64,000 bases of DNA from Podarcis liolepis (Eukaryota). Positions 33,064 to 58,100 of this stretch are shown in pieces. The DNA lies in NCBI GenBank assembly GCA_965112155.1, contig OZ218101.1. One strand, given 5' to 3'. Numbering within the stretch: position 1 is the stretch's first letter; every line of letters starts with the position of its first letter. A program made the translations under genes and the position numbers. Under the pieces are notes generated by a model. It was not told the origin of the DNA and ran no database searches. It saw only the letters and a program-made list of their open reading frames with translations.

Positions 33064-33460
33064 GCATCCGTTGGTAGTCAGAAGAAAAACTTCAGTGCTG
33101 CTGATGTGTGGGGCTGCGAATGCTGACATTTTCTTCTGCCCCTCTCTAGCTCTTGCATCTGGTGGCTCTCTTCCAATAACATCACTGGATGCAACTGGGA
33201 ACTTGGTATTTGCCAATGCTGGAGGTACGCCGAACATCGTCACTGCCCCTCTGTTCCTGAACCCTCAGAACCTTTCACTGCTCACCAGCAACCCAGTTAG
33301 CTTGGTCTCTGCAGCTGCAGCCTCGGCAGGGGCCTCTGGACCAGTTGCCAGCCTTCATGCCACCTCCACCTCAGCAGAGTCTATCCAGAACTCTCTCTTC
33401 ACCGTGGCCTCGGCCAGCGGGGCTGCCTCCACCACTACTACTGCCTCCAAGGCGCAGTGA
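6684..33460 (+). CDS. POU2F1: POU domain class 2 transcription factor 1 (Oct-1), 5'-partial, 14 coding exons in window
   Basis: Join 6684-6778,11540-11593,14643-14762,17148-17327,19751-19877,23561-23655,24431-24604,27574-27715,28990-29135,29480-29659,30108-30213,30568-30910,31345-31433,33150-33460. All introns are GT-AG, phases are consistent and the frame is open to TGA at 33458-33460. Contains the Gln-rich N-terminus, POU-specific domain, POU homeodomain (VRVWFCN-type [15 protein letters not shown]) and Oct-1 C-terminus ...[11 protein letters not shown]. Confidence 0.99.
7300..7640. mobile_element. Old non-autonomous hAT-type element (same family as 32491-32861)
   Basis: Start ttttcagcccgagggccatgttccct is shared with the other copies; boundaries approximate. 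Confidence 0.45.
7649..7881. mobile_element. Tc1/mariner-pogo (Tigger-like) MITE
   Basis: TIR cagtggtacctc / gaggtaccactg, TA on both sides, subterminal taacc(c/t)ga repeats. Confidence 0.9.
9345..9389. repeat. (TG)n microsatellite
   Basis: About 22 TG units. Confidence 0.97.
9453..9856 (+). mobile_element. CR1 LINE 3' fragment
   Basis: gagttgggtatgtttagcctgg...aggagactgag (ELGMFSL..RRL) and a ttctttgattctat 3' end. Confidence 0.85.
11540..11593 (+). CDS. POU2F1: POU2F1 coding exon ([18 protein letters not shown])
   Basis: ttttatag| acceptor, |gtaagt donor, 54 nt. Confidence 0.96.
11880..13103 (-). mobile_element. 5'-truncated L2-clade LINE with simple-repeat tail
   Basis: RT ORF 12997-12299 ([28 protein letters not shown]), C-terminus ...[14 protein letters not shown] (12198-12004) and (TAA)n on + at 11880-11925. 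Confidence 0.95.
14335..14590 (+). mobile_element. tRNA-derived SINE, Squam3-like
   Basis: A box tggtgtagtgg, B box ggttcg, CORE-like gggtgaccttgggccagtcac, (CTT)n tail. Confidence 0.8.
14643..14762 (+). CDS. POU2F1: POU2F1 coding exon ([13 protein letters not shown]...LAGGQITG)
   Basis: tttcctag| acceptor, |gtaaga donor, 120 nt. Confidence 0.97.
15434..15710. mobile_element. hAT (Charlie-like) MITE
   Basis: TIR caggggtaggcaacc / ggttactgacccctg; 8-bp TSD tcttgctc / tattgctc; cggccc subterminal motifs. Confidence 0.88.
17148..17327 (+). CDS. POU2F1: POU2F1 coding exon ([11 protein letters not shown]...QPIQIAQ)
   Basis: ttcctag| acceptor, |gtgagc donor, 180 nt. Confidence 0.97.
17870..19070 (+). 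mobile_element. Highly degenerate L2-clade LINE remnants
   Basis: Endonuclease-like HTPDLVF and SDHFLV, C-terminal [13 protein letters not shown] and GPSYLRDCL, in shifting frames. Confidence 0.75.
19751..19877 (+). CDS. POU2F1: POU2F1 coding exon ([23 protein letters not shown]...QGQQ)
   Basis: ttcaag| acceptor, |gtgagc donor, 127 nt. Confidence 0.97.
20278..23062 (-). mobile_element. Degenerate CR1 LINE (3' end, RT and endonuclease remnants)
   Basis: 3' end aacataagaagagttcttctggatcaggcc on +; AKFADDT on - near 21256-21277; VGIMETWW...ISGYRLY at 23062-22868. Confidence 0.85.
23561..23655 (+). CDS. POU2F1: POU2F1 coding exon ([32 protein letters not shown])
   Basis: ctttcag| acceptor, |gtcagt donor, 95 nt. 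Confidence 0.97.
24431..24604 (+). CDS. POU2F1: POU2F1 coding exon, start of POU-specific domain (PATPTR...[27 protein letters not shown])
   Basis: tagcag| tandem acceptor, |gtaaaa donor, 174 nt from the distal AG. Confidence 0.98.
24785..24950 (-). mobile_element. Old tRNA-derived SINE remnant
   Basis: Family also seen at ~16155-16240, 59520-59610, 61760-61890 and 62440-62580 (shared cagtattgtc..actgactgg segment; tagctcagt head in the + copy). Confidence 0.5.
26943..27145. mobile_element. Tc1/mariner-pogo MITE
   Basis: TIR cagttaaacctcag / ctgaggtttgactg with TA on the right. Confidence 0.8.
27574..27715 (+). CDS. POU2F1: POU2F1 coding exon, POU-specific domain ([47 protein letters not shown])
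   Basis: gtgcag| acceptor, |gtgaga donor, 142 nt. Confidence 0.99.
28990..29135 (+). CDS. POU2F1: POU2F1 coding exon, linker and homeodomain start (ENLSSDS...[23 protein letters not shown])
   Basis: ttttcag| acceptor, |gttagt donor, 146 nt. Confidence 0.98.
29480..29659 (+). CDS. POU2F1: POU2F1 coding exon, homeodomain (NQKPTSEEI...[16 protein letters not shown]...PTSL)
   Basis: ctttcag| acceptor, |gtaaga donor, 180 nt. Confidence 0.99.
30108..30213 (+). CDS. POU2F1: POU2F1 coding exon ([35 protein letters not shown])
   Basis: ctctag| acceptor, |gtaaga donor, 106 nt. Confidence 0.97.
30568..30910 (+). CDS. POU2F1: POU2F1 coding exon, Ser/Thr/Ala-rich region ([19 protein letters not shown]...SQFAAG)
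   Basis: ctttcag| acceptor, |gtaggt donor, 343 nt. Confidence 0.96.
31345..31433 (+). CDS. POU2F1: POU2F1 coding exon ([29 protein letters not shown])
   Basis: ttgcag| acceptor, |gtcagt donor, 89 nt. Confidence 0.97.
32491..32861. mobile_element. Non-autonomous hAT element
   Basis: TIR caggggttggggaa / ttctccatccctg; degenerate 8-bp TSD ctttgatg / ccttaatg. Confidence 0.7.
33020..33061. repeat. (GT)21 microsatellite
   Basis: Direct read. Confidence 0.97.
33150..33460 (+). CDS. POU2F1: POU2F1 terminal coding exon ([14 protein letters not shown]...ASKAQ*)
   Basis: ctctctag| acceptor; TGA at 33458-33460. Confidence 0.98.
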
Positions 33461-33658: not shown

Positions 33659-33664
33659 AATAAA
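33659..33664 (+). terminator. Candidate proximal poly(A) signal of POU2F1 (AATAAA)
   Basis: AATAAA about 200 nt after the stop codon. Confidence 0.45.
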
Positions 33665-33891: not shown

Positions 33892-34028
33892 NNNNNNNNN
33901 NNNNNNNNNNNNNNNNNNNNNNNNNNNNNNNNNNNNNNNNNNNNNNNNNNNNNNNNNNNNNNNNNNNNNNNNNNNNNNNNNNNNNNNNNNNNNNNNNNNN
34001 NNNNNNNNNNNNNNNNNNNNNNNNNNNN
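33892..34028. other. Assembly gap (137 N)
   Basis: Run of N. Confidence 1.
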
Positions 34029-42500: not shown

Positions 42501-44924
42501 GCTCTGCTGTTTTCAGGATGTCTTCGGCAAAAAATTGTGTGGTCTTAGGGGTTTGATTTGATGACTCTTGACTTGGAGGATCTCCTCATGTGTTGGTTTT
42601 CCTACCTTCTTAATGCACAGGGTTGGTTTGGATACTTTTTCTGAGGACATACTGGAGGCAAGTTCTATTCTGGAGGCAAGTTCAACACCCAAGATCACAA
42701 GCAACTGTTGGACGTAGGGAAAACTTGGTTTTATTCTTAAAATATCAAAACTGCATTGTCCTCCTAAATATCAAAACTGCATTGTCCTCTGTTTCCATCA
42801 TTTCAGAAGTCCTGTGGGTTTTCATAGTGGAAAACCTTGGAGACGTCTTTCTTTCCTCCCCGGAATAGCTTTGGGCATTGTCACATTACATGCTATTGGC
42901 TTGATGAATTGCATCAGTCAAGCCTGACATGTTCATGTGTGAAGCAAGGGAGAAGGTAAATATATATTAGTTGTCCAGCTATTCTTCCTCTGGAAATCAG
43001 CTGGGTTGCAGAACTTCCCTGGAAAGCTTTACTAATAGACTTATTGTTCTGACATTATGTAAAGTGGTATTAATATTGTGTGACTTTTCTAAGAGCTAGG
43101 TAGATTTATAAGTAGGTAATAGGGAAATGGAAAATGACTTCTCAAAGATAAGAGCACTTGGAACAAAAGATGTGGAAAACAAGGTGTGCTTTAAAAGAAA
43201 ACAAATCTGAGGAAGGAAATGAAACAACCAGTTGGGAGATGGGATCACGAGAGGAAGATCCTTAGTACTATGAGGAAGGTTGGAATGTCTCCCCTCTTCT
43301 GCCTTATTTCTCTTTACCTCACTCAGGCGAAAATATGGGTTTAATAGTTTGTTGTCGGCTCTTTCCCCAAACATTTCTAAAACTCTGATCTTTGTTCTCA
43401 CCAAAAATTCTCTGTTTTTACAATGTAGAACCCATCAAAAGAAAAGCCTTCCTGAAGTATTTCTAGCAGAAATATCTTTAACCCACCAGGGGGCTATAAG
43501 TGTAAATGGTGAATGTTTCTGGCAAGAGTACCACAGGAATAGTGGTAAATATTAAGGAGTACAGATCTGTGTTAAATTAATATCTGCACAATACAAGCCA
43601 CCCACCCTGGCCAAAAGCCTTGGAACAAACACCTTTTGTCAGGGCTGGGGGGAAACTGTCACTTGTCCCATCTAATCCATGTTAGCACATTGGCATTTTC
43701 GATCCAGTTTCTGTATTTGAATTTGAGGAAGAAGCCACAGCAGATACCCATATACTGATTGGTAAGTTACTTCCATTTATTTGAACCTCCCTGGAGGAAG
43801 ATATAGGCTTTTCTCAAAAATCCAGGAGATAAGAGGTCAGGTGCAAGTGCATTGGAGAGCATCACGGGACTCCGGCCGTTTTGCGCTCCCCTGGTCCCAC
43901 CGTGTCGCTGTTCCATTTCCTTCTTCTGTGGTAGTGTCTAAGGCTAGGTGTGAGTAAGTGTCGGGTGTTTATCCGCCACAGGTACGGGAGCTGTCGTATA
44001 CCTCATTTCTAACTCATAACTGAGTAACTTGCTTTAACTTTCTCCAAGCCCTACAGAGTTGCCAAGACTGCCCTCCCTCCCTTGATTAACGTGGAACTCT
44101 GGCTTATAGCACCCTGTGACCTGTAACCTGGGGGGCGACCCCCTAAAGCCTCTGAATGTCGCTGCTTAAAAGCTACTGCAAACTGAGGGCAAATTGCAAT
44201 CTTCTATTTCTTTTGGTTACCAGGGGTCCTCTCGTAGTCTGTGAATATCCATCTCCACTCCCAATCCGTGCATGAAACCTCCATGCTGCCTTCTCCCTCC
44301 CCCCTGGTGAGATGTCAGGGCTATAATGTACTGCAGGGTCAAGGCAGGACCCTGACAGCTCCTCTCAGCCAAGTGCTGCATGCATATTGCTCGCTACGTT
44401 TTAATTTTGTTTCTCTCATGCTCCTCCCATATTTAATTTCCTTTGTTTATTATTTGACAATCTTGTTCCTCCCCGTCCCCGCCTCTAGGCTAACCAGAAG
44501 CTGCATCCCTGTCCCTTCTGCCATTTTACTTTGAATGTAGTTTCCCCACCCTTTGGAAAGAGAAGCTTTTCCAGGTCACGGTGCACTGCTATATGCCGAG
44601 GGGGGCGGTTTCTTTGTTTTGTTTTGTTCTTTTAGAAATTTCCAGCCAAAACCAAAGATTTCCTAATGATTGTATAAACTCAAAACAGACAAACAAACAA
44701 ACCAAAGACAAAAGGGGCGTCTTCAGCACCAATCATATCTCTCAGATGGCTCGGTCCCATCCTGTGCTAACTTGCTTGGGAGACCAAGTTCTGTTTGACC
44801 TCCGCAAATCCAAAGGCGCACAGCCATTGGGAGGGAGAGTTCAGTGGGGGAAAGTGATGGACTCCACAGATTGGTTGTGAAGCTGAAGACATTGGTGCAT
44901 GACTGGCGGCTCTGGTGGGTGCTT

Positions 44925-45020
44925 TTAACCCTTTGGGAGCTGGGTGATATTAATACACGCTGAGGTGCACTTCTGAGCTCTCTCCCCCCCCCCCCCCGCC
45001 ACTGCTTGGAAGAGGCTGTC
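44925..45020 (-). CDS. CD247: Putative CD3-eta-type alternative terminal exon of CD247 (DSLFQAVAGGGGERAQKCTSACINITQLPKG*)
   Basis: Minus-strand acaacag|GAC AGC CTC TTC CAA GCA GTG, phase 0 like the exon 7 donor. Resembles the start of mammalian eta exon 9 (DSHFQAV, recalled). No expression evidence. Confidence 0.5.
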   Translation of the reverse strand, partial: DSLFQAVAGGGGERAQKCTSACINITQLPKG

Positions 45021-46424
45021 CTGTTGTGCAAAATCTCTGAAAAAAATGTTTTGTTTTTCTTTCTCTCCCCCCCCACTTCTTTTTTGTTCTTTAATTATTT
45101 TTGCAGCACCACTGTGCAACTATGCATTGTATTTCTCAACCTTTTGTGCTAGGTAGGTAGATGCCTATGACTTTTTAAACTTTGGGGGAGGGGGGGTTGC
45201 CAATGAAGGAACTTTTTACATGGATCTTTTAAATCTCAGTTGATTAGGGGGTGTTTGGTTCTAGGGTCATACAAGCTCTATCCCAAAGCAAAATCCAAAT
45301 GTTAATAATATTAGCCTGATGCAGATACCAAAGATAATTTCTTTCCTGCAGAACCTTAGACTTGTGTATTAAGTACAATTACCCAGCACTTGCATTAGTC
45401 TAACCTCAGTAATTCCAAAGCTTAGATGTATATTTTGGTATATTTCTGGGATATTAAAAATGTCGTTTAAATTCTTGTTTGTTTCAGTGTAATGCTCTTA
45501 AAGTCATAGCATGGAGATAACTGAATTGTCTTATTCTTAGTAGTTTGAAATAATAGTATTTTTGTATGTTTTGGGTGTGTCAATGTATGTATTAACACAA
45601 CAGTTTTCACTGCCTAGGTGTTCATAATTGAGAAAAAGTGTACATAATCTGTGATTTCCACCAGATTGTCGATTTAGATTGCATTTTCTCTGATTGCCAT
45701 TCCCAACAGGGGGATCTTTATTCCTTTTTTTTTTTTTAAGAGACAGCATGCTTATAACAGTGAGATTGTACTTTTGCCCTCCCATAAAGGTCCAGTTCCC
45801 TGAAAACATCGTCCTTTAATTTTGAAAGGTGAGGCAAGACTCAAAGTGTAGCAATTGAATAACTAAAAGCACGGATATTACTATGCTAGGAATTTATGCT
45901 TTTTGTTTTTATAGTGGGGGGGAGGGATCTTGCCAAGAAAGCTATGGTTTGTGGAAATTGATTTATAAAATCCTGAGCTCTTCCTATGGCAAAAAAGAGA
46001 GATTTGTGTTGATTACAGAGCTTCCCTGTCGTCAACCATCAAGTTGGCTTATATCTTCCTCAGGCCTGCTAATGTGGTCAATTGTACAGCTTAATTTACA
46101 TGAACACTTTGTATCTAACTGTGATAAATATATTAAGATACAATGCATTCTTGCCTAACTTTAAATTTGAGAACTGTAAGGCCCTATTTTGAAACTGTGT
46201 GTGTCTCCAAAATGGAGATGAAAAGGATGCTGTCTCTTTAAATATACCTTCTATTTTTTCCCTAGTGGCTGCCTACAGGTGGCTGTGGGCATTGAGAGAG
46301 ACTGTGTAGATTATAGTGAATCAGGATGAAAATGGTAGATTTTGTGTAGATGCATTTGTCTGCTGTAATTTTTATATATATAAAACTTACTGTAACTGTA
46401 CAGTTCATTTCTGTTGTAAACATC

Positions 46425-49120: not shown

Positions 49121-52100
49121 CTGATAAAGAAAGATGAGATGACTCAAAGTTATAACTAAATCAATATAACTGTAGTTATTAATCAGAAGTACTAAGTCCA
49201 TATGCCCCTGCTAAAAATAAGTCCAACAACTCTGGCTTTCTATCCAGAGTAAATAAAGGTGACAGGCTGATACTCATAGCAAGGCAAAAGTCCTGCTTAG
49301 GAGAAGAATGTGACTGGTCCATTGTTTGTTGGAGGAAGCAAAGATGTATACTGCCCTTAGACGCGCCTCTGTACTTGTTCCTTCACAGACTGCATTAACA
49401 CCTCTGGGCAAGCAAAAATATTCTCTTAGGTGGCTCAAAGTGAGGGAACAGGGCACTTGCTGTGGTCTCCCATTGTAGAAAGGTGATCCAAATTGACAGG
49501 GTGCATGTATGCCAGAAACTAATTAAAGCAAAGGCAAACAAGATTCCTGTGTGAGCTGCTTTTGTGCAGCTTGCTTCCATAGGATTGTGACCCTGAAGTT
49601 TGTAAGGAGATAGGCTTGCTATTGCTGTGCCTTACCTGATAAACTGTTTCACTGCCTTTGCCACGTCGTCTCTGAAAAAAAGAAGCCCAGCATCAATACA
49701 AAATCTCCCTGCCAAAATCTTTTTGCCCATGCAAATAATTACACTCACACTTGGCTCAATTTAACTGGGGGAAATGGGAGGCTTGCTTCTGATTGGTCTT
49801 TTAAGAAGGTGCTGCACAATCTGACTCAACTGCCCCTTAATCAGTAATAAATAAAAATAATAAAGCACAGAAGTGTCATTCAAACAATATCAAAAGGGTG
49901 AGGAGGATACTATAACTTCTGTTTTGCTTGACAGTACTGCTTTAAATAAAGGGTAGGAAAAAAGCAGGCAGAGTAGTGCCTGAAGCCACCTTGGCACCTT
50001 ATGTGTAGAGCCAAATTGGCAAGAAGTGTCACTTACCTCTCCTTTCTTTCCAATTTCGCTGTATGCTTCAGCCATCTTATCCCGCTGTAGAGCCTGGCCA
50101 TGGAAGATCAGAAAATAGTGTCAGCACGAATAAAATTAAAGTACTGTTTTCTGTCATACCACTCCTCTTTGTCAGAGATAAGAAACCATGGACTCTCCCT
50201 CCAGATGTTCTTCCAGTTCACATCAACCCCAGCAAGCAATGTCCAGTGGTCAGGGACGATAAACATTGTAGTCTAGCATCATCTAGAGCAGTGTTTCCCA
50301 ACCGGTGTTCCGCGGCACACTACTGTGCCGTGAGACATCGGCTGGTGTGCCGTGGGAGGGAGGCGGGCGAGAGGCGGCGGCGGCGAGGATCCGGCGGGGG
50401 TGGGGGGAGCGGGGGCCGTCGCGCGCAACCGAACTCACTTGGCGCGCTGCCGGCTTGTCCTCCTTCAACCCGGGTCGGGCCAGGCCTGCTCACGTCCCCG
50501 GATCCCCTAGCAGCAGCCGCACGCTCTCCAAAAGCGCAACGCTGCGCGCAACCGCTCGGCCAGCTGGTGCTCTGCGACTCCGCCCTTTCCCCTCCCAGCG
50601 CCGGAGGGTTCGCGCGACCGCAGCTGTTCCCTTTCGCAGCGCGCGGGAAACAATTCCAGGCCGATTGCCTTGTGCCGAAAAGCACCGCCTCTCCTTCCAG
50701 CTCAGGCCCGGGCCGCCGGCTCCCCGAATGACGTCACGGGGGCGGGGCTTTAATGGTGGTGTGCCGCGAGATTTTTTTCCGGTAAACAGGTGTGCCGTTG
50801 CCCAAAAACGTTTGGGAAACACTGATCTAGAGAGCCACCTACAGGTTCCCTATCCTTGCTATATAGATATAACAAAACAATACTTTCCCTGTGTTCATTC
50901 ATGGGAGAGGAGATGTGATTGGTGGTCCAGACTAAGGCAATGTTTCTTCCTTCACATTGCAGTTAGACTTGAAAGAAACCACTTGTTGAGTACAGTAAAA
51001 AACTCCTTTCAAGTCTACTTGCAGAAGGGGGGGATGCTGCAGGCCAGATGGGGAGACCCTGCAGGTCAGCACTTACTCTTGCTTTATACTCTCTTTATTT
51101 GGTAATTCCCCCCCCCCCAATGTCAAATAGGTCCCTGCTACTCCCATACTACAGCCATGGGAGGATTTCAATGTTGCACTAATTGAGCATCCCTTGGTGG
51201 GCTACTAGTTGCATAAGGAAAGGGCAGGAAGCCTTGTGGCAGGTCACACAGCAGATTGCTGTAGTCAACAGTACTTCCTCCTGTACAACAAACTTGCACT
51301 ACCACAACTGGGGCGGGTGCTGGGGAATACTACCCCACAGAGCAGGTTGGGGGAAACTCTGGCCCTCCAGATGTTGCTGAACTTCTGCTCCCAACATCCC
51401 TGGCCATTGGCCATGTTTGCTGGGGCTAATGGGACTTGGAGTCCAACATGATATGAAGAGCCAATGGTTTCCCATGCCTGCCATACAGTCTGTTCAATTG
51501 CACATTCTACCTGTCATTAATGGCATTTCATGGCAGCTGTTTGCTGCAGCAGAGGAAAACAGATCACAAAAGTAGCGTGCTGCTGAAATGGCATAGGGAC
51601 AGACATGCACACATAAAAATTTTGCATGCAGGAGCAGAAAACATTCTTTAAAAAGAAAGAAAAAGTGGACTCTAGCAGAGTGAGGCTAAAATGCAACAGG
51701 AATATAAGTTTTTGTAAACCAAAGCAGACTGCTTATGGGGTTCATTAACAGCATGAAAACAAGCTGGGTCTTGAAACACATTCTGGGAGAGGTATTTGGC
51801 ACCCATGCGCTCACAATCAATCAAACAAATACACTGGCAAATTGTCATTTGTGTGCAAAACGAGATAAATTAATGAGGGTGATGCCTACATGGTAGCACA
51901 ATTTACTTCCCAGTGTTGTTTCAGATGTCTTTAGGTGGGTTTTATGTGAAGGTGGCTGGTCATTTTAGAAAACTGAAAAGCAATTTAGAGAAATTCTAGA
52001 CAATATGGCAAGAAACCAAAATGCTTTTCTGAAATGGTCAGTTCTTGGTTTTACTTACACTGTAAACTCTGTCCTGAGCTTGTTTTCTTCTGTGCTGAAA

Positions 52101-55100: not shown

Positions 55101-58100
55101 ATGGGCATACACCTGGTTGGTTGGGAGATGATTGCCTGTGGTGAGCACCTATCAAATACTTGCTACATTCCAGTTTTGGGCTATTGACATAATGGAGGAA
55201 TGTGCAGAAGTAACATGCAAAAGGTAAAGTATGGGTGGGGCAATGGAGACACTCTTGAGTATTTCTGTATCAGAACAGAGCACTGCCATCTCTTTATAGC
55301 AAATAGGTAAGCCAGGTAAGCCAAAGGTTGCCTTAACTCTAGACTTTAATCTAGTGATTAAAAATAGAAGAATACGCTTGAGAGTGCTGCCCTATCCAGA
55401 AACTCCTTAGAATGTATGTTTCTTTCAAATTCTTAAAGTGAGGATGCAGCAAAGCAAAACCACTATTTTAATTAGTATGGAGAAGACCACACACTGAAAG
55501 ACAAGAGTATATTCCAAATAGAATATAGTTTAAATCTAGTTAATTGGGAGGCGATCTACTGGATGCTGTAATTTTATTTGATATAAAACTGGTTCTGCAT
55601 GCTCCTCATTGTGGAGGGGCTACCACCCACACTGTGCTTTGAAGTCCCAACTATTGGGGCTTCAAAGTGCAGCAGCATCTGACATCCCTAAGGCCACCTG
55701 TTTGATTTGGTCCACCAGGAGAACAGACTAAGATCTGGTCCACCAGACAGAAAAGATTCTCCACTTCTGATTTAAACCTAACTCCTGAGACCCACTCTAT
55801 TACCAGAAGATCTCACTGCCATTAACTCTCCCCCCTTGCTAAGCTGGGGGAACTTGAGAGGACTCTAACAAAAGGGGTAATGAATTTTAAAAATCTGCTT
55901 AGGATTTGCCCTGACTCTGGAGGAGTCCTAGTTGAATCTTGAGGGCAGATCCACGAAATCTGGTCTCATTTAATTGTCTGTCCTACTATAATTATTTTAT
56001 TTGTGAAATAAAAATCATTCAATTTCAAGAAGACATAAGTTTAGTACTTACATTATATAGGTCCTCTGAATTCTGAGAAGTTTGAGGTTCAGGAGAGCCT
56101 TTGCATATCTGGAAAACACAAAGCCCATTTCTATCTCTGAATGTGACTTTAACAGGATAATTTCTGCTAGTGATTTATAAATGGTGCTTTATAAACCTAC
56201 AACCCACACATTTCATGGCGATTCCAATATTCTCTTGTTCCCAAACTCGAATAACGCCAGTTACGTAAGTATATGAAAACTGCATATTAAAAAAGCATGT
56301 AAAAATGTAGATTCATCATTGAATTTCTAGATCTTTGGTCATCTTTTCCTAAACTCTCAGGAACTATGCATACATTGTGATATGCAGAGCACTAAGCCGT
56401 TAAGAAGATCAAACATGTTTTAGGATATTAATAGAGTACTGAAAAGTTTCTCTGCAGTGTTCTTGCAATCTTATCCTAACTTTATTTGCAGCTAAACAAC
56501 CTCCTAGTGGCAATGGTAGAGATTTACCCATTTGTTGGTAAATGGAAAAATGGTTCCAAAGTACAGTGGTACCTCGCAAGACGAATGCCTCGCAAGACGG
56601 AAAACCCGCAAGACGAAAGGGTTTTCCGTTTGCGAGTTGCTTCGCAAGACGAATTTCCCTATGGGCTTGCTTCGCAAGAAGAAAGCCCATAGGGAAATTC
56701 CGGGGACCTCTTTTAAATGCTGGCGGTGGGGAGCAAAGCCTCCCCTCCCCTCTGGCCTTCAGAAGAGGTCCAGGAAGGCCGGCGGGGGCCGAAAGTCTTT
56801 GCTCCCCACCGCCAGCATTTTAAAAGCAGTCCGGGATAGCAGGGAAGCGCTTCCCGCTATCCCGGACGGCTTTTGAAGGCAGGCGGGGGGGGGAGCAAAG
56901 ACTTTCGCCCCCCCGCCCGCCTTCAGAAGAGGTCCAGGACCTCTTCTGAAGGCAGGCGGGGGGCCAAAGTCTTTGTCCCCCCTGCCTACCTTCCCAGAGG
57001 CTTTTAAATCGCCCTGGACAGCGGAGAAGTCCTCCGCTGTCCCGGGGCGATTTTAAAATGCCGCCCGCCAGCATTTTAAGATCGCCCCGGACAGTGGAGA
57101 AGTCCTCCGCTGTCCCGGGGTTTTTTAAAATTCTGGGGGTGGGAAGAAAAGCCCTTGCCCCCCCCCCCCAGCCTTCAGAAGAGGTCGGGGACAGATTGTC
57201 CCCGGACCTGGTCTGAAGGCGGTTTCCATAGGAACGCATTGATTGATTTTCAATGCATTCCTATGGGAAACCGTGCTTCGCAAGACGAAAAACTCGCAAG
57301 AAGAAAAAACTTGCGGAACAAATTAATTTCGTCTTGCGAGGCACCACTGTAAGTATTGTTCATCAGGCACCTTTTAATGGCAGGTATGAAATCTCAAATT
57401 TCCAAGAGGGAAAGTGTTTTGTTTTGCTGTTTTGTTTTTAATTAGTTATTACTAAAGGTTTTCTTGTGTAATAAAAAAAGTACATAAAGCATCTCCACTT
57501 TCAGTTCATAGAGTCTTTTTCACAGTTCGTTTACATTTGTTATGAGGTACCGTTGTCATAGACATTATGCGGGGAGCATAAGTGGCAGAAAAAACTACAC
57601 TCATTTAACTTCTCTCACAAAAAACATGAATAAACTCCACATTCCTGCACCTCCCATCCTCAGAATGATGGGGAATTCCCAACACAGAACTATGCTATAT
57701 CACCTACGAAGTCCACCACATAATCCCACAGAAGACGGAATGAAACAAATGGGTACACGTGGAAATAGATAAAACCAGAAACACCCCCACTACAGTGTAC
57801 ACAAGAGGGAAAGTTGCATTGAAGGTTGGCAACAGGTCTGCATCTTCCCTTCTCTCTCTTTGTACTTCTTGTCTCTGTATACACTGCTTACCTGTGTGTG
57901 AATATGAATACAGAGTGGGAAAGGCAAAAGATTCCGTCTTTGCATTGATAACTCAGCTTGCAAAGGAGTCCCCAGAGGACCACAAACAGCAGCTGCCACC
58001 ATTTAAAATGTCTTTCATTAGGTTTGAAGGGATGTTTTTTGCTTTTCACTTGGCCAATATCTGGGGCTGGAAGCAAGCAGCTGGTTGTCAATTGACTTAC

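Follow-up and report, generated by a model that had tools for sequence, protein, structure and literature searches.

CD3-eta, a variant of the CD247 (zeta) chain, is usually regarded as a rodent curiosity. In mouse, the exon that distinguishes it (Cd247 exon 9) reportedly lies antisense to the 3′ end of Oct-1, a finding that is said to go back to work by Jin in 1990, Clayton in 1991, Lerner in 1993 and Ohno in 1994. Here, the corresponding region of a lizard, Podarcis liolepis, is analysed in a window of 64,000 nucleotides (nt; contig OZ218101.1 of assembly GCA_965112155.1, to which all positions refer), where CD247 exons 2–8 lie on the − strand and POU2F1, the Oct-1 gene, on the + strand, arranged tail to tail. 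The gene pair, its layout and the placement of an eta-like site downstream of the last zeta exon are those of the mouse, and both species have, in phase with exon 7, an AG and then DS[L/H]FQAV, a site whose use would remove the second half of the third immunoreceptor tyrosine-based activation motif (ITAM3). The lizard nucleotides downstream of these codons are also homologous, as the comparison with a CD247 model of a bat (P0058) indicates. The two systems differ in that the lizard reading, like that of a bird, ends after ~30 codons whereas mammalian models read on, and in that the frame is not the same. The lizard site is known from sequence, and its link to the mouse runs through the bat model.

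The block that carries this site (~44831-45038) is probably an ancient non-coding element that is shared across amniotes and belongs to the distal 3′ region of POU2F1, and the mouse would have exapted it as eta. The lizard block is most likely a non-mammalian case of the known sense/antisense arrangement, without a role at the protein level. The raw material of eta is far older than mammals, for a lizard and a bird also possess the AG, the first codons after it and, within the Oct-1 tail, the downstream block. The locus provides a clean example of how constraint on the opposite strand alone can make an exon look conserved, and a warning that deep conservation of an antisense exon is not evidence that the exon is used.

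Homology with the eta-type tails of a bat and a starling

A profile-free search for the zeta family, with the exon-2 open frame, gave 96 representatives, and an eta-type ending was seen in two of them. P0058 is a CD247 model of the bat Rhinolophus ferrumequinum (KAF6292573.1), in which the GLYQ end of exon 7 is joined straight to DSHFQAV and 62 further residues, and P0011 is a CD247 model of the starling Lamprotornis superbus (KAI1242427.1), which ends in KDFSRQDSLFQAV...INITQPPEG and includes DSLFQAV. Both tails were compared with the window by tblastn and by frameshift-aware protein-to-DNA alignment, with shuffled tails as a control; P0168 and P0204, named human by their source, were excluded from the comparison. 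The bat tail (69 residues) aligns from 45023 to 44831 with a score of 96, as against 36 ± 6 for shuffled tails (z 9.9; 31/60 residues identical), and the starling tail aligns from 45038 to 44945 with a score of 85, as against 24 ± 3 (z 20.7; 22/28 identical; E = 4.5e-7 in tblastn). Both alignments are collinear and fall at the eta-like site, and tblastn gave no comparable match elsewhere in the window. Together they delimit a conserved block, common to the bat and bird eta-type tails, at 44831-45038, which extends past the proposed coding part on both sides.

Judged by these alignments, the lizard block and the mammalian eta exon are truly homologous, the bat model being the link; a likeness to the mouse eta sequence itself is probable. 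Lizard, bird and bat have the AG and the next seven or eight codons in common, which places the sequence of the block before the split between mammals and sauropsids. The preliminary description of the locus, made from the letters alone, had claimed that the eta acceptor predates this split. Homology, place, AG and first codons are indeed shared. However, conservation as a coding exon does not follow, given the frame changes, the spill-over of similarity beyond the proposed exon and a homopolymeric run of 14 G within it, all described below.

A further search, with the Podarcis zeta chain, covered the best 120 of 200 CD247 clusters, among whose representatives, squamates included, no eta-type tail was found and mouse eta did not turn up; in ~240 CD247 proteins overall, such a tail was seen in the bat and starling models only. 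The starling tail alone, used as a protein query, matched only itself, one metagenome scan with the degenerate pattern QDSLFQAVxGG gave no match, and a full-text literature search for the CD247/Oct-1 overlap or the peptide gave nothing useful.

The starling model deserves a comment of its own. Six of its residues, KDFSRQ, lie upstream of DSLFQAV and align across the proposed AG, so that the starling exon would start at or near another AG, at 45037-45038. It is also an odd model, in which residues ~129-152 correspond to a part of exon 8 read one frame off (PRTLMMLSKCSLCPPAK being KDTYDALQMQPLPPR shifted) and in which this out-of-frame piece of exon 8, not exon 7, precedes the eta-like block. 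The model suggests a transcript or a prediction that links the last zeta exon to the block.

Splice signals and reading frames of the eta-like site

The site was first recognized on the − strand 4.6 kilobases (kb) past exon 7, where acaacag is followed in phase 0 by DSLFQAV...LPKG at 45020-44925, and re-examination of the letters bears this out. The proposed acceptor (acaacAG, then GAC) has its AG at 45021-45022, and the first frame that it opens reads DSLFQAV...INITQLPKG, that is 31 codons and a TAA (45020-44925, stop at 44927-44925). Position 45020 lies 4,616 nt past exon 7; the zeta stop is 4.0 kb away, and the block begins 11.4 kb beyond the stop of POU2F1, which puts the eta-like block downstream of the last zeta exon, on the CD247 strand and antisense to the 3′ end of POU2F1. 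Exon 7 (49671-49636, − strand), which reads RRRGKGSETVYQ, is in phase 0 at both ends and finishes on a gtaagg donor, so that its join to 45020 would be in frame and would give YQ followed by DS.FQAV. An AATAAA on the CD247 strand, ~570 nt past the proposed AG (44446-44451), is a candidate signal that could end an eta-type terminal exon.

The context of the acceptor is weak. The pyrimidine fraction over positions −20 to −4 is 0.47 at the AG at 45021-45022, as compared with 0.76 at the exon 7 acceptor, and further AGs stand at −18 and −16 (i.e. 14-16 nt ahead), whereas at exon 7 the nearest upstream AG is at least 33 nt away. The AG at 45037-45038 (− strand), 16 nt ahead of the proposed one, comes right after a T-run (tttttttcAG, then AGATTTT) and has the stronger, T-rich context. 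Joined at that position, exon 7 would continue into a different and unrelated tail, in frame 3, with a stop after 28 codons. Between the two AGs (45023-45036, − strand), the CD247 strand carries the letters ttttgcac; TTTGCAC is the seed match of the miR-19 family, a coincidence that may mean nothing.

Within the proposed coding part lies a G14 homopolymer (C14 on the + strand) at 44984-44997. With one base more or less, the reading would switch to a 123-codon frame or to one that is closed by a stop within a few codons. A homopolymer like this, set in a block that is conserved elsewhere, probably varies in length and invites errors of assembly; the starling protein suggests a much shorter G run at this position. 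The 123-codon frame is frame 2, open from stop to stop (45094-44726, − strand). That the sequence continues one frame over had been noticed in the preliminary description, and the next frame on the − strand does read KSTHQSRQSCTNVFSFTTNLWSP. Frame 2 contains the block STHQSRQSCTNVFSFTTNLWSP, which had been likened in the preliminary description to the C-terminus of mouse eta. A protein search with the 123-codon frame gave no relatives. Special weight for its length was rejected, as the window holds 26 stop-to-stop frames that are as long or longer.

Conservation in this block is of nucleotides rather than of one reading frame. The only stretch that is kept in a single frame is Q-D-S-[L/H]-F-Q-A-V, with about one glycine after it. 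Along the lizard DNA, the bat tail starts in frame 1 and passes through two further frames, changing frame three times within 193 nt; its alignment crosses lizard stop codons, and the 31/60 identity is reached only when frame shifts are allowed. The bird tail runs from frame 1 to frame 2 and back to frame 1, with two frame changes. Its segment LRSAPQRVLI comprises ten identical residues that the lizard encodes in another frame, after which the two species share one frame again through INITQxPxG, up to a common stop position. Lizard and bird thus stop at 44925, whereas the bat reads on there. The downstream block is read in frame 3 by the bat, and mouse eta presumably passes from frame 1 into this block in the lizard frame 2. 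Similarity also reaches beyond the proposed exon, 18 nt upstream of the AG (KDFSRQ in the bird, RDFAQQ in the lizard) and, in the bat tail, ~95 nt beyond the stop of the lizard, as far as 44831. As judged from the two protein models, conservation is independent of frame and extends beyond the antisense 'exon'.

The reading frame of the eta-specific tail is consequently not conserved, in view of the frame changes against both bat and bird and of the G14 run. The use of the same nucleotides in three frames by different lineages reads as the signature of a constraint on DNA or RNA and not on protein. The block is homologous, but as its frame is not kept beyond DS[L/H]FQAV, conservation as an eta coding exon is not supported. 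An element of the POU2F1 3′ untranslated region (3′UTR), which had been put forward in the preliminary description as a fallback, would fit these observations better than a coding exon.

Explanations for the conservation of the block

Such an element would most likely lie inside a long POU2F1 3′UTR, a few hundred bases before its last poly(A) signal. In the direction of POU2F1 transcription, the block comes 11.4 kb after the stop codon of that gene, with an ATTAAA beyond it at 45453-45458 (+ strand), ~430 nt past the block and followed by a T/GT-rich stretch, which makes it a candidate distal POU2F1 poly(A) signal; earlier poly(A) signals are also present. The block would owe its preservation to a function on the Oct-1 strand, presumably in the stability, the translation or the choice of the 3′ end of the Oct-1 message. 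Its reverse strand would happen to carry an AG and DS[L/H]FQAV, and the mouse would have exapted this antisense AG as the acceptor, and the codons after it as the first codons, of Cd247 eta. The lizard, having inherited the same letters, would show an eta look-alike with the remaining frame free to drift, so that its tail would not be a conserved protein. Any splicing of exon 7 to 45020 in the lizard would be a minor and unselected by-product, giving a two-ITAM zeta chain with a short arbitrary tail.

The mouse literature goes in the same direction. The eta locus is described as colinear with, and antisense to, Oct-1, an overlap announced in the title of the 1993 paper by Lerner et al. Disruption of the locus reportedly altered Oct-1 transcription and was often lethal, and the mouse knock-out work of Ohno et al. 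from 1994, by its title, points to the Oct-1 strand.

Several points weigh against a distal POU2F1 3′ element. It would require that the POU2F1 3′UTR reach the block and that 45020 go unused in the lizard. In lizard, bird and bat alike, the AG is kept and the seven or eight codons after it stay in frame. Despite two indels, lizard and bird have their start (DSLFQAV), their end (INITQxPxG) and their stop in one frame, as would also be expected of a short tail conserved among sauropsids. At least one annotation pipeline has joined CD247 to the block, as the starling model shows. Lastly, conservation of the flanks was judged from proteins and over a few dozen bases.

Conserved non-coding DNA outside the POU2F1 message, for instance an enhancer, an insulator between the two genes or a separate non-coding RNA, is an improbable alternative to a 3′UTR element. 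It would spare POU2F1 a 3′UTR of 12 kb and would agree with the earlier + strand AATAAA/ATTAAA signals at 33659, 34860, 39737, 40138, 41173 and 41479. However, the mouse eta exon reportedly overlaps the Oct-1 transcript, going by the titles of the Lerner (1993) and Ohno (1994) papers, and a scan of 44694-45600 against Rfam, in which an RNA family might have appeared, gave no match.

A selected alternative last exon of CD247 in sauropsids, i.e. an ancestral 'eta', is likewise unlikely. Exon 7 would then be spliced to 45020 in T cells to give a two-ITAM zeta chain that ends in DSLFQAV...INITQLPKG. The phase 0 of exon 7, the 31-codon tail opened by the AG at 45022-45021 and the AATAAA 570 nt downstream on the − strand are all in place, and the AG and first codons are kept in the bat too. 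Within one frame, bird and lizard agree over seven residues at the start and about nine at the end, and both stop at the same position. Yet the middle of the tail is frame-shifted between the two, and by chance alone a frame would be kept over two indels in about 1 case in 3 and 15 codons would stay open in about 1 in 2; the combined chance is ~1 in 6, so that the shared start, end and stop lend weak support to a sauropsid eta. Moreover, the G14 run lies inside the tail, and the AG is weak and shadowed by the one upstream. The bird residues cross the proposed AG, with the bird exon following a frame-shifted piece of exon 8 and not exon 7, and no isoform of this kind occurs among the best 120 of 200 CD247 cluster representatives. 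That the ancestral amniote could already dispense with ITAM3 through a splice into the Oct-1 3′UTR, and that this would be no mouse oddity, is a claim that we regard as quite doubtful. Should such splicing exist in reptiles or birds, which is unlikely, the tuning of ITAM number through a sense/antisense overlap would be an ancestral amniote feature.

A chance resemblance to eta, for which one might invoke the shortness and partly low-complexity character of the tail (the G run), is hardly conceivable and is refuted by alignments that are collinear and fall exactly at the syntenic place, with the z values (9.9 for the bat, 20.7 for the bird) and the tblastn E value already given.

Gene layout and intron-7 read-through isoforms

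The remaining CD247 exons of the window were placed on the − strand as follows: exon 2 at ~59.5-59.4 kb, exon 3 at ~56.1 kb, exon 4 at 52773-52681, exon 5 at 52097-52059 and exon 6 at 50093-50037. The coding part of exon 8 (49120-49052) reads GLSKATKDTYDVLQMQPLPPPY followed by TAG and ends in LPPPY; it is the normal end of zeta, supplies the second half of ITAM3 and shows no difference from the Podarcis zeta proteins P0001 and P0097. Translation of the exons yields the zeta chain known from Podarcis muralis (P0097) and P. lilfordi (P0001). On the + strand, the POU exons of POU2F1 lie at 24.5, 27.6, 29.07 and 29.55 kb, and the last coding exon ends in TASKAQ and a TGA at 33458-33460. A run of N occupies 33892-34028.

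Among the best 120 of 200 CD247 clusters, the variant ends of squamates (lacertid, Varanus and Anolis) are intron-7 read-throughs, and the turtle variants are without an eta-type tail. The read-through isoforms are P0103 (Podarcis muralis, Ensembl-type), P0098 and P0220 (Zootoca, isoforms X1 and X3), P0140 (Varanus X1) and P0129 (Anolis), and the same kind of end is annotated in some mammals (P0044, P0046 and P0051). In the window, the read-through is found at 49519-49635 (− strand), where YQ is followed by VRHSNSKPISLQ...CLCFN and a stop; this peptide differs from that of P. muralis P0103 by two residues (S for R and S for N). Read-through would give, like an eta-type join, a zeta chain without a complete ITAM3 and with a short unrelated tail. 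The two differ in origin, as read-through arises from unspliced intron 7 (49635-49519) and not from a distant exon, and in annotation, as read-through isoforms are annotated in lizards, unlike the eta-type tail. The read-through end may represent a genuine isoform or simply RNA that was left unspliced.

The comparison with the eta-type models can be set out in the same manner. The bat P0058 and the lizard site both carry the DS-FQAV start, and three frame changes, with lizard stops crossed, are needed to follow the bat tail further. With the starling P0011, DSLFQAV, INITQxPxG and the stop position are the same, and the bird exon starts further upstream.

Some observations concern the CD247 introns and exon 2. 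The intron between exons 5 and 6 contains a GC-rich stretch at ~50100-50800 (fraction of G and C 0.505 in 50001-52000, as compared with ~0.41 nearby) with long open frames on both strands, which may be a CpG island or an internal promoter. Exon 2 of the window agrees with that of P. muralis and differs from that of P. lilfordi. In the intron between exons 2 and 3, the stretch ~56400-57450 shows many overlapping open frames on both strands with recurring peptide motifs, a pattern that suggests a tandem or interspersed repeat.

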